Shown: positions 37,334-43,802 of the stretch, one piece after another
How positions within the stretch are numbered: position 1 is the first letter of the stretch
How the letters are laid out: every line of letters begins with the position of its first letter
NCBI GenBank assembly: GCA_001179505.1
Contig: CDMY01000465.1
Location: 7,230-71,229 of the forward strand
Direction of reading: 5' to 3'
Origin: Vitrella brassicaformis CCMP3155
Lineage: Eukaryota; Protista; Chromerida
DNA: 64,000 nucleotides
Notes under the pieces: model-generated
The model's input: only the letters and a program-made list of their open reading frames with translations
Databases searched by the model: none
Told to the model about the DNA's origin: nothing
Position numbers and translations under genes: made by a program

Positions 37334-39000
37334 TCACTGCCGCCTCCTCAGCGCCCCCAGCAGCCCCTGCACCTCTCTCCCAAACTCACCCTCACCCACA
37401 CTCGGGTACAGCCCACCGCCCGCATTCTCTGGCTGGTCCCCCCCTCCCAGCAGCTGTCTTGACACATTGCGCACGGCAGACGCCACCACGTCGGGCAGGC
37501 CGCCAGGGGGCCCGAGCATCGGGGTGCGGAAGACGGCTCTGGCGCGCCGGGCGCAGTCCATGGTGTACTTGCCGTCCAGCACACCGCCGAGCAGAGAGCC
37601 GAACGCTGGGATGCTGCGGAAGAGGCGGGTGCCACCGGCCTGGTATGCAGATCCATGGATGGATGGATGGAAAGGTGTGGGTGGGTGGGGGGTGGTGTCA
37701 GTCAGATACCTTGGCGATAAGGTGGTATACGACGTTCTCCAGTAGGTGTGCCCATTCCCATGGAGGCACCTGAGAGCTGCATCACAGCACATGACATCAC
37801 ATGGGAGAGAATGACTGATAAGGGATGCATGTGGTGATGTGTGTGGTCACAAGCTCAGCTCACCCTCCGTAGACTCCGATCTTCCTCAGGGTGGCGACAC
37901 AGCCCTCGTCACCCAGCAAACACGCAATGATCTGCATACACACACGGGACAGAGACACAAATACACACACAAACACTGACGTGCCGGTCTCCCTCCCTCC
38001 CTCCCTCCCTCTGTCGTACACACACACCTTGAGTTGCGTCTCGGGCATTTGCACGTCATGACCCTCCATCTCAGCTATGATCTGACACACACAGGCAGGC
38101 AGGCAGTGTGGTCTCTCCTCGACTTCGTGTCGCTCTCCCTCCCCCCTCCCACTCACCCCTGTCAGCCTGCAGCTGAAGAACAGCGTCGACACCATCCCGA
38201 TCGGCAGCAGCACCAGAGACGTCGTCCAGTGCAACGGCGTGCCCGTGAAAAAACCTGCAAACACCAACCACACACACACACTCACACCCATCGCACACAC
38301 ATCCAGAACACAGTCACATTCCTGCGACAAACAGACGGACCTGAGAGGAACGCCCCGGATGCCTGGTGGTTGACGAGGTACTCGAGCGCATGGTTTGTGT
38401 CCCGGAACTCCTGGTCGTCCACCTGCTTCTTGAGCCGGTCGGCGCACTGCTTAACGGGGTGGAAGGATATCAGCCAGCTCATCTCGTCGGCCTGGTCCTG
38501 GCTGACGGCCAGGGGCAGCCACCCGAGAGGGATGTGGATGTCCACTCCCGTGAGCGACCACTTCATGAGCTGCTGCACCGCTGTCTTGAGGTCCATTGTG
38601 GTCAGGCAGCGGGCGATCGTCGCACTCACTGGGCGGCTGGAAGGCTGACAACGACGAGAAATGGCCAGGACACATTGCAGTGGATGGCTGGACAGACGGC
38701 TGGGTGCTTACGCGTGTGTTGAGGTTGTAGTTTCTGATGAGGTTGTCGAGGCTGTCTATGCGTATGGTCCGCCGGCAGGCTGGGCACTCAACTCTGCCGT
38801 GCTTGTGAAGCTTCCTCAGGCACCGACGGCTGCACAACATGCAGACACACAGACACAGACAGAGTGAACACACGACAGGCTACTAGTTTCATTCCTTTCT
38901 CACTGCTCTGCTCCACTTACCAGTAGCTGTGGCCGCAGGGGAGAATCAGCGGTGTCCTGTCAGGCTCTCGAAATACCTCGTAACACACGGGGCACTCCAT
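37334..39000 (-). CDS. C3HC4 RING E3 ligase-like protein with an uncharacterised C-terminal region
   Basis: [34 protein letters not shown]...CPACRR...NYNL. Downstream exons splice in phase as far as ~37860; the last exons are uncertain. Confidence 0.75.
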
Positions 39001-39348
39001 CTCGTACACTCATCACATTCAGATGTCTCCCTTTTTTCCTTCGGGTTTCCGAAGAAGGGCCTGAGAAACCCGCGACCCCACGAAGCTCGCAATCTGGAAC
39101 CCTACACCCGAGACCCAGTTGTTCCCAAAAGCGAAGAAGACAGGAAGAGAGAATAGCTAAGGAGCAAGCGAGGATGGTTGAAGTATCGCTTTCCCGCTTC
39201 AAGCCGTCACAGGGCGTGGTAAGCAACCACACGCTGTTCCTAACACCGCGCACACACTCAAGGCTTGATCTCATCTGCATCTGCTCCTCTCTGTCTTTCC
39301 TCTTTGCAGTGATTCTTTCTTGTGGCTGTAGCCGTGCAGGGCACGACA

Positions 39349-42300
39349 ATGCGGACCGACGCCATGGGTACGGAGTCGGTGGACCACGATGTGCTGCGGC
39401 AGATGATCCGGGGCGACGTGATGGAGGGCGCTGTGCGTGTTGTGAGGGTCACCGGTGCTGGCGAGGATGAAATCACGTACGTGAGCCACTGTGGGTGTGC
39501 ACGCGGAAGAGAGTTCCTTCCTCCTTCCTGTGTAAGTGCTCTGTGGGTCCTTCTCTCTGTCAGTGTCATTGCCAACGATGACGAGTCGAGCCGCAAGGTG
39601 GTGCTTGATGCCAGGGGGGTGCAGGGCGGCCAGGGGGTCGGCAGATGGGATGTGGTGCGCATCAGCCAAGTGACACTGCGGAACCGACCGGAACACGGGT
39701 GTGTGTGACTGACGTGAGAGGGAGGATGGGAGGGAGGGAGGGAGGGAGGGAGGGAGGGAAGACCTACACAAAGCGGCAATTGTGTGGATTCTCCTGTGTG
39801 TGTGTCTGCAGAGGTGTCCACCTGTTCGCCCGTGCGTGTGAGCGGCTCTCGTCAGGGCAGCCCCAGCCGGCCTCCATGGCGGCCAGCCCTTCCCCTCCCC
39901 CCACCCCCGCCCCACGACGCACTCTCGCACACACGCCGCAGCTGAGGACACCACCCGCTGCAGCAGCATCAGCATCAGCATCAGCATCAGCATCACGGCC
40001 GGCACGGATGACGGGCGGCGGTGGCCTGCTGCAGCGCATTATCAGGGGGGAGCTAACGGAGGGCACTGTGCGTGTGGTCAACACGCAGCCGAGCCAGGAA
40101 CAGAACGAGATCGTGTAAGCGCGCTGAGGGGTCGGCCTTGGCGCGAGTGGACGTCTGTGTGGGGGCTTGTTTCACGCAGGTTGATAGTGAATGATGGCGA
40201 TTCGTCTCGTAAGGTCGTTCTCGACGCGAGTGGCTTGGACGATGGGGGCCGGGTCATTGCGAGAGGTGACCACCTGCACATCAGCCAGGTCTGCCTGCGC
40301 GAAGACGCGGCACACGGGTACCCAAGAAGACACACATCCACATTACACTCAGGTGGCGGACCACTCACCACTTGTGTGTGTGGGCGTGTCTACTCAGGAA
40401 ACACCTATTCGCCGCCGTCTCGAGACGACAGGCGCCCCCAACAGGGCCCTCCATCCCCGCACCGTCCCAGCCATCAGCACGACCACGACCAGCCCGGATG
40501 ACCATGGGCGCGTCACCTGCAGCTCCGGCTACCCCGGGTCCCTCCCAGCCATCAGCACCAGCGCGAGCGGGGCGGATGAGCGTTAGTCCTCCGCGATTAT
40601 CTTTGACGCCTGGAGCGGCATCATCTCAAGAGGACCCCGCCGCCGGCTGCTGATGGCCCGGTGAGGATTGCCGATCTGAGGGCGGAGGGGTCGATACGGC
40701 AGCCCATGAAGGCGCGGGTCTCGTGCAAGTGAGTGGGGAAATGAACGGGCAGGAACGGGACATCCCATTGTGGGTGCGTTGAATGTGACGGCCTGCCTGC
40801 CTGCCTGCCCGTGTGCGTGTTAGGGAGGAGTTGAAGGGCTTCACTGGCAAGAACGGGAAGCCTGGGAAGCGGTTTACCTGCCTCCTCACCGATGAGAGTG
40901 TACGTCGGGATGGAGGGGAGGGAGGGGCACGCCCCATTGCCTGCCATGATCCCCCCTGTCCATGTGTGTGTGTGTGTGTCCTTAAGGGCGAGATTAGGGC
41001 GTGTTTCTTCTACGAGGCTGCCGATCGATACCACGGCATGCTGCAGAACGGACAAGTGAGGACAGACAGACAGACAGACAGGCAAACAGACAGAAAAACC
41101 GCTGGAGTGATTGCATGGATCGACCCTTCTGTGGTCTATCTGCTGGAACTGCGTGTGCAGGTGTACAGTTTCTCTCACTTCTCTGTTAAGGAGGCGAACC
41201 GGTCGGTAGGGATGGCATCCATGGCATCCAGAACAAGAAGACGATACACATCACATCACAGACACCCTTGGTCGGTCCGCAGGCAATTCAACCGGACGGG
41301 CGACTACGAAGCGATGTTCCACAGCAGCTCCTCTGTCGAGCCTGCTCAAGATGACGGGACCATACCCCTGCAGGCCACGTAAGCCAGATGTCATCTGTTC
41401 TCTCTGTCTGTGTGTGCGTATGTGTGTGTGTGCGGTTGGTTCGTGCAGGCATCCTCACCAGAAGATCGTGCAGATCAAGCAGCTGCCGACCAAGAGCAAC
41501 GTCAACCTGCTCGGCATCATCACCAAAGCAGACAACATCAGCCACCGGGTGAGCCTTGACACGCACACACACACAGAGAGAGAGAAGGGAGACATCTGTT
41601 GCTGCTGTGTGTCGCCTGCACATGCTCTGACCAGGGCGGCAGCAGCCACCGCACTCTGCGTGTGGTCGACGACTCAGAAGCGGCCATCGAGGTGACCCTC
41701 TGGGGCGACAAGATCACGCAAAGCCAGAGGGTGGACTTCAACGACGGCGACATACACACTATAGACATCAAGGGTCACACACACACACAGACAGACAGAC
41801 AGACGGAGGGAGGAAGTGGATCGTATCACCTGTGTGTGTGTGTGTGTGTGTGTGCGTGCGCTTAGGTGGTTCGACAGGTGAGTACAGAAACCAGAAGAAC
41901 GTGCAGGTTGGCGGCATGGCCTGGATGGCCATCGACTCGGACCGGCCAGAGGCAGCAGCACTGAAGACATGGTACATACAGGTGAGCGCTTTCACCAACC
42001 ATCCCATCGATCGTTGGCCAGCACACAGACAGAAAACCCGAGAGACGTTTTCTTGTGTGTGTGTGTGTGTGTGTGTCCGTATCTGCAGACAGGTGGCAAT
42101 GTCAAGCGAAGACGGACCAGACAAGTGAGCAGCCTACCCTACACAGAGGCGGCCCGCTTACGTACTTGCATTTCTCTCTCACCTTCTCGTGTTTCCTTTC
42201 CTTTGTGGTGTGCAGGGCCCCCGACCCTCATCCCCTCCCTCCCTCTTCCCGCCCTCATGCGGCCGCTACACCATCACCGACGTGACCTGTGAGATGCAGG

Positions 42301-43238
42301 AGAAGGTCGCCACGCTCTTCGACAAGACCTCCCACGCCTCTGGCTGCCCCCACTCCACCAACCTGCGGGCCAGCAATGTGGTCAAGGTCCTCCGTGTGAC
42401 CGACCCAACTCGGATCTTCCAGTACAACGCCAAGAGACGGGAGATCCAGGAGAAGCTCGCGCGGCGGCGGGAGTGCGGCAACACTGGCCAGGCGTATGTG
42501 GTGCCCTTCGACGCGACAATCCGCCCCCACGCCCTGCTCAAGAACCTCAATGGCCACTCCTCCTCCTCCTCTCGCTCAGCAGATGAGGGAATGGGTGAGT
42601 CGGAGCAGCTGAGCGAGACGGTGGATTCCTCGATCAACGAGTGCTGGCTGTTCCACGGGACCAACGCTGCGCACATGACCGACATCCTGCGGGACGGCAT
42701 CGACTTCCGCGTCGGCAGGGAGGGCGGGATGTTCGGACCAGGCATGTACTTCGCCTCGGAGGCCTGCAAGAGTGAGTGAGCCAAGGACTGAGGGAGGGAG
42801 GGAGGGAAAGACAGAGAAAGAGGTGCGTGGATGCACATCAGATGTGTGTGTGGATGGATGGGTGGGTATGCAGGTCACTGCTACGCATCTGGTGGCCGCC
42901 CCTACTGCGTCATCCTCCTGTGCCGTGTGTTGCTGGGCGACATGTACTTCGCCAAACACGCTGACCCGAGCCTGCGCCGCCCCCCTGTCCGCGAGGCGCC
43001 GGCAGGGTCGCCGATGGAGCGTGACTTGTACGACAGTGTGGTGGGCAAGAAGGACAGCACCTCGTGCGATAGCTCGGGAATGTTTCGCTACAACACCATG
43101 AAGCTCAACCACAATGAAGTCAGTGAGTGAGGAGCATGAGCTGCAGGGGTGACGTCATATGGTTTGTGTGTGCAGATGATAGTCTACGATCGGTCGCAGG
43201 CTTACATCGAGTACATCATCTCCTATGAGAATAATTAG
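39349..43238 (+). CDS. RPA1-like OB-fold protein (2x RPA70N-like, DBD-A, DBD-B) fused to a PARP catalytic domain
   Basis: DBD-A: PVRIADL...KARVSCK/...KRFTCLLTDES/GEIRACFF.../VYSFSHFSVKEANR/QF...DYEAMF. DBD-B: VNLLGII...RTLRVVDDS...VTLWG...IDSDRPEAAALKTWY. PARP: NECWLFHGT...GMFGPGMYFA...KSHCY...LLCRVLLG...YDSV...NE/MIVYDRSQAYIEYII. All junctions from DBD-A to the stop are phase-compatible GT-AG. Confidence 0.8.
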
Positions 43239-43802
43239 CGGGGCGGCAGGTGGCTTGTGAGGATGAGGGTGGGTGTGCTGCATGCACACAGAGTCCGCCT
43301 TGCGCACTGAGCGGCTTAGTACTGACGTCGACCTTCGCTGTCGCCTGTTGAATTGGGGGAGGGAGGGAGGGAGGGAGGACATGGCGTCCGTCTCTGTCGC
43401 TTTGCTCGCTGTTCCGTGATGTTTTCTGCATGTGACTGTGCAATGAAGTTTCCCAACATGCAGCAGAAGCGATTCTCGCTTATAGCGGTGCCTAATACAT
43501 GCGCGCACAAGCAACGAGACGGACGCACACGCGTGTATATACCCTCAAACAGTGAACAATTGAACCATCAGACGTGAGACACAGTGATGCACTGATCCTT
43601 CGACACGTCTTATGCGTTTGCCTTCTTCAAGATTCCATGTGTTGACTTTGATTCGTTGATCTGTTCAATCGACGTCTCTCGTCCAATCGTGTCTCAGTTC
43701 ATCCATGAAACCGAACAGCCATGGAGGCGCCCGGAAAAGAAAAGAAAAGAGTCTCCTCCGCTGCTCCACCAGACAGACAGACAGACAGTCACGCACACTC
43801 AG

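Follow-up and report, generated by a model that had tools for sequence, protein, structure and literature searches.

In Vitrella brassicaformis, OB-PARP is a real chimeric gene that is expressed: the DBD-A and DBD-B OB folds of RPA70, its high-affinity core for binding ssDNA, are followed in it by the catalytic domain of a PARP. This layout was absent from every other organism searched. The explanation we favour, and consider reasonably probable, is that the gene encodes a chimera of RPA70 DBD-A/DBD-B, a basic linker and PARP, working as an ADP-ribosyltransferase tethered to ssDNA. It lies in a stretch of 64,000 nucleotides (the window, in whose positions all coordinates are given) of contig CDMY01000465.1 from strain CCMP3155. 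The features of the locus are listed in Table 1.

Table 1. Positions, strand and supporting evidence of the features of the OB-PARP locus
Feature	Position	Strand	Evidence
ORF1, 319 aa (exons 39349-39476, 39564-39698, 39812-40114, 40180-40317, 40398-40653)	39349-40653	+	RNA junctions
Proposed 49-nt intron, retained in transcripts	40582-40630	+	RNA contigs
ORF1 stop codon, TGA	40651-40653	+	
OB-PARP coding region (ORF2, 519 aa, P0001)	40706-43238	+	RNA contigs and spliced translation
ORF2 exons 1 to 6	40706-40728, 40824-40899, 40987-41055, 41161-41201, 41283-41378, 41449-41548	+	
ORF2 exons 7 to 12	41635-41773, 41866-41981, 42089-42124, 42216-42771, 42874-43118, 43176-43238	+	
RPA70 DBD-A-like OB fold (P0001 residues ~1-100)	40706-41378	+	Pfam, PDB phmmer, Foldseek
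RPA70 DBD-B-like OB fold (P0001 residues ~103-222)	41449-41981	+	Pfam and PDB alignments
Mini-exon of 36 nt, phase 0, encoding the basic linker KRRRTRQ	42089-42124	+	RNA junctions in runs X1, X2, X7, X8
PARP/ART catalytic domain (P0001 residues ~251-519)	42270-43235	+	Pfam, PARP1 and tankyrase alignments, Foldseek
ORF2 stop codon	43236-43238	+	
3' UTR, reaching at least 43348	43239-43348	+	X7 and X8 RNA contigs extend to 43348

The original prediction had proposed a single spliced frame starting at 39349. The part running from the OB folds to the PARP domain held, since the translation of the 12 spliced exons (40706-43238) is identical to a public protein of 519 aa (P0001), whereas 39349-40581 belongs to a separate frame. 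Most splice junctions of ORF2 were directly present in RNA contigs, and those adjoining masked intronic repeats were deduced from GT..AG sites and contig ends. Every ORF2 intron is confirmed, either directly or by flanking contig ends together with the exact match to P0001. The two junctions linking the OB folds to the PARP domain (41981/42089 and 42124/42216) lie within single intron-less RNA contigs from four runs (X1 record 2, X2 record 7, X7 record 18, i.e., L002, and X8 record 22). Transcription across 41979-42215 thus speaks for the fusion, and the phase-0 exon join reads, as had been proposed, KTWYIQ/TGGNVKRRRTRQ/GPRPSS. The stretch from the last OB exon to the PARP exons is also present in DNA contigs of independent runs (X3 record 17, X5 record 24), which excludes an assembly artefact as the source of the join. 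Judging from composition alone, the KRRRTRQ linker is a possible nuclear localisation signal.

The first ATG of the OB-PARP ORF, at 40706, is most likely the start of the protein. The annotated start fits because homology to RPA1 begins 2-3 residues ahead of this methionine and extension upstream adds no score: the RPA1 HMM gave 131.9 with the extension vs. 130.6 without it, a value equalled by 376 of 1000 shuffles. We also considered whether RIADL, upstream of Met 40706, could be the PIASL segment of RPA1 and prove upstream translation; this was rejected on the same scores.

Pfam, the PDB and Foldseek concurred on the predicted RPA1-like DBD-A and DBD-B. The DBD-A region matched the tRNA_anti-codon OB profile (PF01336, 28.1 bits, over the curated cut-off) and the DBD-B region matched REPA_OB_2 (PF16900, 35.2 bits vs. 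a cut-off of 27). Searching the PDB with phmmer, we matched the OB region to human and Ustilago RPA70 AB structures (1fgu, 1jmc and 4gnx) at E ~1e-21, with F, F, W and Y aligned in 1fgu and 1jmc (E ~8e-21). Foldseek matched DBD-A to 4gop_C and 1jmc_A at E ~1e-19, with a TM-score by target of 0.77 for 1jmc_A. The four aromatic positions that stack on ssDNA are kept as F, F, W and Y: in the PDB sequence alignments, Phe41 (41008-41010), Phe72 (41287-41289), Trp158 (41701-41703) and Tyr188 (41883-41885) align respectively with F238, F269, W361 and F386 of human RPA70. The tandem is ~27-32% identical to animal and dinoflagellate RPA1.

The resemblance to RPA70 stops at the W-Y/F motif that precedes DBD-C in RPA1 and lies directly ahead of the linker in OB-PARP. 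The DBD-C profile (Rep_fac-A_C, PF08646), present in every RPA1 match, matched neither P0001 nor the extended ORF. In P0001 it is the PARP domain that follows DBD-B and forms the C-terminus, in agreement with the original prediction. Without the zinc-ribbon OB fold of DBD-C, OB-PARP has no canonical way of trimerising with RPA32 and RPA14 and thus of joining the RPA trimer. A further difference from RPA70 is the lack of a detectable RPA70N; its profile (Rep_fac-A_N, or DBD-F, PF04057), suggested earlier for a domain check together with RPA OB and PARP, gave no signal in ORF2.

The catalytic half matched the Pfam PARP profile (PF00644) at residues 368-517 of P0001, at E 1.6e-22 and 80.4 bits, where the cut-off is 26.7. 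As anticipated, it retains the H-Y-E triad, with all three motifs located: His379 (42654-42656), Tyr410 (42747-42749) and Glu499 (43116-43118). The NAD+ pocket further includes Ser418, whose codon is split between 42771 and 42874-42875, and Tyr421 (42882-42884). These five residues (His379, Tyr410, Ser418, Tyr421, Glu499) align with H862, Y896, S904, Y907 and E988 of PARP1 and with tankyrase residues. The catalytic glutamate is the final codon of exon 42874-43118, and the junction that follows it (43118/43176, reading HNE/MIVYD) is confirmed by RNA. Among PDB sequences, the best match was the catalytic domain of PARP1 (E 1e-11), in which the counterparts of His, Tyr and the catalytic Glu all line up. 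For the exon carrying the H and Y motifs it was tankyrase (E 1.6e-4); most exons are too short to score in exon-by-exon Pfam scans. Foldseek retrieved PARP1 and tankyrase at E ~1e-11, with TM-scores by target of up to 0.73 (tankyrase). The AlphaFold model of P0001 had a mean pLDDT of 81, and most of the two OB folds and of the ART core was modelled at more than 90. The PARP domain, whose NAD+ pocket is complete in sequence, is apparently active.

Upstream of OB-PARP, and on the same transcript contig, we found an ORF of 319 codons (ORF1) in another frame, the OB-PARP frame being +1 relative to it. The genome annotation likewise has two genes, of 319 and 519 aa, the former without a Pfam match. 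ORF1 consists of two repeats of ~95 aa that are 47% identical, plus Pro/Ala/Ser-rich linkers. Introns interrupt the two repeats at matching positions and in the same phase, and the repeats have a dN/dS of 0.36. No homologue or family was found for ORF1 in Pfam, the PDB, the Atlas or homologue searches: it is an orphan tandem-repeat protein whose reading frame is separate from that of OB-PARP. The single-sequence AlphaFold model of the repeats had a pLDDT of 44 and was uninformative. That they are a duplicated RPA70N was not supported, with no lead from Pfam, the PDB, the Atlas or homologue searches and an hhalign probability of 0.2%. The region 39349-40581, which had been taken as the N-terminal part of the fusion, thus lacks any Rep_fac-A_N or RPA70N signal.

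The two ORFs would have been joined by a 49-nt intron, with its joint at ~40581-40631, the weakest in the original prediction. This segment was unspliced in every transcript assembly seen: X7 record 18 and X8 record 21 each run through 40397-40728 without a break, and the 49 nt were kept in three independent transcript assemblies, with k-mer depths of ~99 and ~20. The JGI transcript L003 begins inside it, at 40597. The 40581/40631 joint was not listed in any of the eight runs searched, and the 24-mer of the spliced junction was absent from the JGI contigs. Set beside 15 real introns, all of which are longer (57-113 nt), the candidate stands out by a T at donor position +3, seen in none of them, by its rare AAG acceptor and by the lack of a TG-rich tract. 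As the 49 nt are retained, ORF1 ends at its TGA.

These data bear on a protein of 839 aa, in which a minor or condition-dependent isoform devoid of the 49 nt, or +1 recoding at the ORF1 stop, would fuse the ORF1 repeats to OB-PARP. We regard it as unlikely. The order of its parts would be that of RPA1 (N-terminal modules, linker, DBD-A, DBD-B), followed by PARP, and the linker rich in Pro, Ala and Ser at the end of ORF1 has its counterpart in RPA1. The two ORFs share one transcript contig (L002), excising the sole plausible GT..AG pair restores a single frame, and Logan contigs lose rare variants, which leaves room for a minor isoform. Yet the retention of the segment, the missing joint and 24-mer, and the atypical length and splice sites all argue against splicing. 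The context of the stop (TGC-TGA-T, where a +1 shift leads into the ORF2 frame) is suggestive of recoding, but no stable RNA structure was found after it (z 0.11). Moreover, the repeats have no similarity to RPA70N and the upstream extension brings no homology score.

The only transcripts seen thus place a 319-codon ORF ahead of ORF2. Under the scanning model ORF1 should hamper the translation of ORF2, unless a shorter mRNA exists. RNA depth climbs towards the 3' end, and this rise and the 5' end of L003 are compatible with such an mRNA, short of proving it.

OB-PARP combines traits of several known systems. Like PARP1, PARP2 and PARP3, it would couple a module binding DNA lesions to an H-Y-E ART domain, but its OB folds are of the RPA type, implying ssDNA, whereas PARP1/2/3 use zinc fingers and WGR at breaks. 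In contrast to them, it lacks the helical regulatory domain, and PARP1-style allosteric release therefore cannot apply: neither this domain (PARP_reg, PF02877) nor WGR had a Pfam match on P0001 or the extended ORF. Tankyrases 1 and 2 also have an H-Y-E ART domain without the helical regulatory domain, but carry ankyrin repeat clusters and SAM where OB-PARP has OB folds as its putative targeting module; the Pfam scan of P0001 gave OB, OB and PARP only. OB modules derived from RPA70 also occur outside the canonical trimer in RADX, plant RPA1 paralogues and DUF223 proteins. To our knowledge, none of these stand-alone RPA1-like proteins has an enzymatic ART domain. The N-terminal half further resembles the tandem-OB structure of the HIN-200 sensors AIM2 and IFI16 (Foldseek E ~1e-12), which follow a comparable plan, with tandem OB folds that bind DNA and feed into signalling. 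This is a similarity of fold only, with 9-16% sequence identity, and HIN domains differ in binding dsDNA and signalling through PYD domains.

From this architecture we infer ssDNA-targeted ADP-ribosylation by OB-PARP. The OB pair would tether the enzyme to exposed ssDNA, e.g., at stalled forks, resected ends, gaps or foreign ssDNA. The unrestrained catalytic domain would then use NAD+ to ADP-ribosylate itself and neighbouring proteins, possibly also DNA ends. Recruitment, and not allostery of the PARP1 kind, would then set the activity. The H-Y-E triad is necessary, yet insufficient, for polymer synthesis, and PARP3 and PARP4 carry it too; the product may be polymers or single ADP-ribose units. 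A more specific scheme is rather doubtful, and we offer it tentatively: OB-PARP would be a PARP specialised for recruitment to ssDNA, marking RPA-type substrates (gaps, stalled forks, foreign ssDNA) by ADP-ribosylation and needing no break sensor. Its mRNA would hold both ORFs, and the ORF1 product would be either a partner expressed alongside it or, under some conditions, part of the same polypeptide, through regulated excision of the 49 nt or a +1 shift where ORF1 stops.

The main target could instead be nucleic acid, if the OB pair brought the ART domain into contact with ssDNA or DNA ends, so that the DNA itself was ADP-ribosylated. PARP1-3 act on DNA termini and DarT is a bacterial ssDNA-specific transferase; OB-PARP would be analogous to the DNA-end modification of the former and, functionally, to the latter. 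The predicted ssDNA-binding module directly adjoins the ART domain and there is no protein-interaction module. Still, OB-PARP has a catalytic domain of the eukaryotic PARP type, nearest to PARP1 and tankyrase, which are mainly protein modifiers, and we judge this target improbable.

When the PARP exon was searched against 1.84 billion representative proteins, only the protein itself was found below E 1e-30, and the next-best match was a triple-PARP of Ptychodera (E 1e-13). Among the matches listed, the 149 PARP relatives nearest to it all lacked an RPA-type OB. Word-index searches for orthologues, whether queried with the entire protein or the OB region alone, returned RPA1s only, and a scan of JGI metagenomes found none. 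No cluster in the Atlas or AFDB combined an RPA OB with PARP, and the literature searched held nothing relevant on this architecture; the original prediction likewise named no described protein of this kind. OB-PARP is already in the databases solely as an automatic entry, i.e., P0001, a Vitrella protein automatically named 'Poly [ADP-ribose] polymerase' with precomputed Pfam matches.

A fusion confined to one species, with no orthologue found, and an ORF2 that follows 319 codons of another ORF on the transcripts seen would suit a recent, lineage-specific outcome of exon shuffling that has hardly any function or none, either an expressed chimera or an untranslated downstream ORF of the ORF1 mRNA. 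We give this little credence: the OB region is old, being only ~30% identical to any RPA1, and the four intact aromatic DNA-contact residues, the open frame over 12 exons and the complete set of PARP pocket residues make an absence of selection unlikely.

PARP1 is a break sensor and RPA a sensor of ssDNA, and in the systems known to us the two communicate only indirectly. The ssDNA core of RPA70 wired to an H-Y-E PARP would be a minimal and testable model of ADP-ribosylation triggered by ssDNA, and the protein is a possible tool to mark ssDNA in cells. The two-ORF transcript poses a separate, tractable question, that of the translation of downstream ORFs in chromerid algae.

The OB-PARP gene encodes P0001, a 519-aa protein that is the exact translation of twelve exons from 40706 to 43238, in an intron-rich eukaryotic window of ~59% GC (window coordinates are those of the genomic locus L001 + 34705; assembly GCA_001179505.1, contig CDMY01000465.1). 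The Logan contigs of four runs (X1, X2, X7 and X8) lack the introns and hence stem from spliced RNA. One X7 contig, L002 (2271 nt, ERR558152), extends from ~39966 to 43348 and holds the OB exons, a 36-nt mini-exon and every PARP exon; record 2 of X1 and record 7 of X2 independently run from the last OB exon across the mini-exon into the PARP exon. The stretch 41868-43348 is unbroken in DNA contigs from independent runs. The RNA bridging, the unbroken DNA contigs and the exact translation show that the OB-PARP fusion is not an artefact of assembly or gene modelling. The join in the original prediction is thus real and transcribed, and the contigs span it rather than stopping short of the PARP exon or beginning with it, which favours fusion.

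Domains of P0001 and splice junctions of the transcribed region (window positions unless residues are given)
Feature	Position	Strand	Evidence
tRNA_anti-codon OB	P0001 residues 19-59		Pfam 28.1 bits, above curated cut-off
REPA_OB_2	P0001 residues 108-195		Pfam 35.2 bits, above curated cut-off
PARP	P0001 residues 368-517		Pfam 80.4 bits, above curated cut-off
Junctions, upstream part	39476/39564, 39698/39812, 40114/40180, 40317/40398	+	RNA contigs X1, X2, X7, X8 pooled
Junctions, OB exons	40728/40824, 40899/40987, 41201/41283, 41548/41635	+	RNA contigs X1, X2, X7, X8 pooled
Junctions, linker/PARP	41981/42089, 42124/42216, 42771/42874, 43118/43176	+	RNA contigs X1, X2, X7, X8 pooled
Junctions beside masked intronic microsatellites	41055/41161, 41378/41449, 41773/41866	+	Inferred from contig ends and GT..AG sites

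Tetra- and dinucleotide microsatellites (GCCT, GGGA, CAGA, TG) occur in introns at 40751-41032, 42725-42865, 39714-39768 and 41053-41098. Their k-mer depths are 10-50x the gene depth in RNA and DNA runs alike; they interrupt contigs, generate many false joints, and look like a genome-wide intron feature. The 5' side (39174-39312) may hold a 5' UTR intron at ~39219-39309, and a 15-codon upstream ORF from the ATG at 39174 that would end at the exon junction; in record 17 of X7, the 137 nt located 5' of 39309 are not contiguous on the genome. The neighbouring gene (37334-39000, minus strand; L001 2629-4295) encodes, by annotation, a 364-aa RING-finger protein.

The OB half is RPA1-like, as predicted. 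It matched the RPA70 DBD-A/B crystal structures (1fgu, 1jmc and Ustilago 4gnx) with E ~1e-21 over ~225 residues, and Foldseek of the AlphaFold model returned the same unit (4gop_C and 1jmc_A, E ~1e-19, TM by target 0.77). In the alignments to those crystal structures Phe41, Phe72, Trp158 and Tyr188 align with RPA70 F238, F269, W361 and F386, the four aromatic residues that stack on ssDNA; the DNA-contact residues are intact. The RPA70 match stops at the W-Y/F motif, which in RPA1 lies ahead of DBD-C, and the Pfam scan found neither Rep_fac-A_C nor Rep_fac-A_N in P0001. DBD-C is therefore missing and a PARP domain stands in its place. A basic cluster encoded by the mini-exon is a possible nuclear localisation signal.

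For the catalytic half, the sequence matches were PARP1 (E 1e-11), PARP12 and the tankyrases, and Foldseek gave PARP1/tankyrase (E ~1e-11, TM by target at most 0.73). The expected H-Y-E triad was recovered as His379, Tyr410 and Glu499, aligned with PARP1 H862, Y896 and E988, while Ser418 and Tyr421 occupy the positions of S904 and Y907; the NAD+-pocket residues are intact. An H-Y-E triad allows polymer formation without proving it. The PARP1-type regulatory domains are absent (no WGR or PARP_reg in the Pfam scan). The AlphaFold model of P0001 (33-row alignment, mean pLDDT 81) exceeds 90 over the greater part of the ART core and of both OB folds, with low confidence in the linker and one Ser-rich insertion.

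The proposed start of the frame at 39349, through a 49-nt intron (40582-40630), did not hold. The region 40397-40728 is contiguous in X7 (k-mer depth ~99) and X8 (~20), the joint 40581/40631 is absent from the joints listed for their contigs, and the JGI transcript L003, from a third assembly, starts at 40597, within the supposed intron. Retention of the 49 nt makes the upstream frame stop at TGA 40651-40653, giving a 319-aa ORF (ORF1); the OB-PARP frame is +1 relative to ORF1 and has its first ATG at 40706, 52 nt past the stop. The genome annotation likewise has two genes, of 319 and 519 aa. An 839-aa fusion of both ORFs through a minor isoform or recoding is unlikely. Logan contigs lose rare variants, so that a minor spliced isoform could be missed, and a +1 shift at TGC-TGA-T would link the frames. 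Yet the hypothetical junction 24-mer was not found in JGI contigs, and the candidate intron is shorter than the 15 real introns used for comparison (57-113 nt, none with T at donor +3, acceptors mostly CAG/TAG after TG-rich tracts), with donor GTT, acceptor AAG and no TG tract; the ORF1 stop has no stimulatory RNA structure for the shift (z 0.11). The k-mer depth climbs toward the 3' end (5.4, 19.6 and 40.7 in X8; 59.6 and 99.3 in X7), which, with the 5' end of L003, fits an internal start site or plain 3' bias alike.

ORF1 and the OB-PARP ORF share one transcript contig in different frames. ORF1 consists of two repeats of ~95 aa (47% identical, two introns each at equivalent positions and phase) with Pro/Ala/Ser-rich linkers that include an (Ala-Ser)n run from a GCATCA hexamer repeat (39949-40002), where RNA contigs end. 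The repeat-versus-repeat dN/dS of 0.36 indicates that ORF1 is coding. It is an orphan that arose by tandem duplication of the ~95-aa unit: we found no Pfam or PDB match, no Atlas lead, and, in the libraries searched, no homologue with an E of 0.01 or less, and its AlphaFold model is of low confidence (pLDDT 44). The repeats are unsupported as duplicated RPA70N domains (hhalign probability 0.2%). The 33 codons 5' of Met 40706 in the OB-PARP frame were rejected as an RPA1 pre-DBD-A segment: the RPA1 HMM scored 131.9 bits with them versus 130.6 without, and 376 of 1000 shuffles did equally well. RPA1 homology begins 2-3 residues ahead of this annotated Met.

The search for orthologues found none, nor did any search turn up a second annotated protein of this type. 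Scoring of 1.84 billion representative proteins with the PARP exon left P0001 alone below E 1e-30; the next-best match (E 1e-13) came from the hemichordate Ptychodera and is a triple-PARP protein, and an RPA-type OB region was absent from all 149 of the best-scoring PARP relatives. The two families are not united in any fold cluster of AFDB or any cluster of the ESM Atlas, and the JGI metagenome scan gave no relative. With the whole protein or the OB half as query, word-index searching gave nothing but canonical RPA1s (Anopheles, 32% identity; Crypthecodinium, 29%) plus archaeal RPAs, so that the OB half is an old, diverged derivative of RPA1 and no recent copy. Four marine sediment metagenomes from 2025 (X13-X16) contain 10-16% of the sampled 31-mers from 39349-41400, which suggests that Vitrella or a very close relative lives there; these runs could yield a diverged gene copy for gauging selection. 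P0001 is already public under an automatic name with the same Pfam matches, and our literature search found no paper on it or on the architecture. Domain shuffling is notoriously common among protist PARPs, so the protein is no new kind of system.

The DBD-A/B of RPA70 is an ssDNA-binding unit sufficient by itself, and in P0001 it would bring the enzyme to ssDNA. An ART domain without the autoinhibitory helical domain would act on itself and on proteins close by, or possibly on DNA ends, its activity being governed by recruitment. That the substrate is DNA instead of protein seems quite improbable. We give equally little credence to a functionless chimera, or to a downstream ORF left untranslated behind the 319-codon ORF. 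The idea that Vitrella directs ADP-ribosylation to ssDNA through this protein is a reasonable one.
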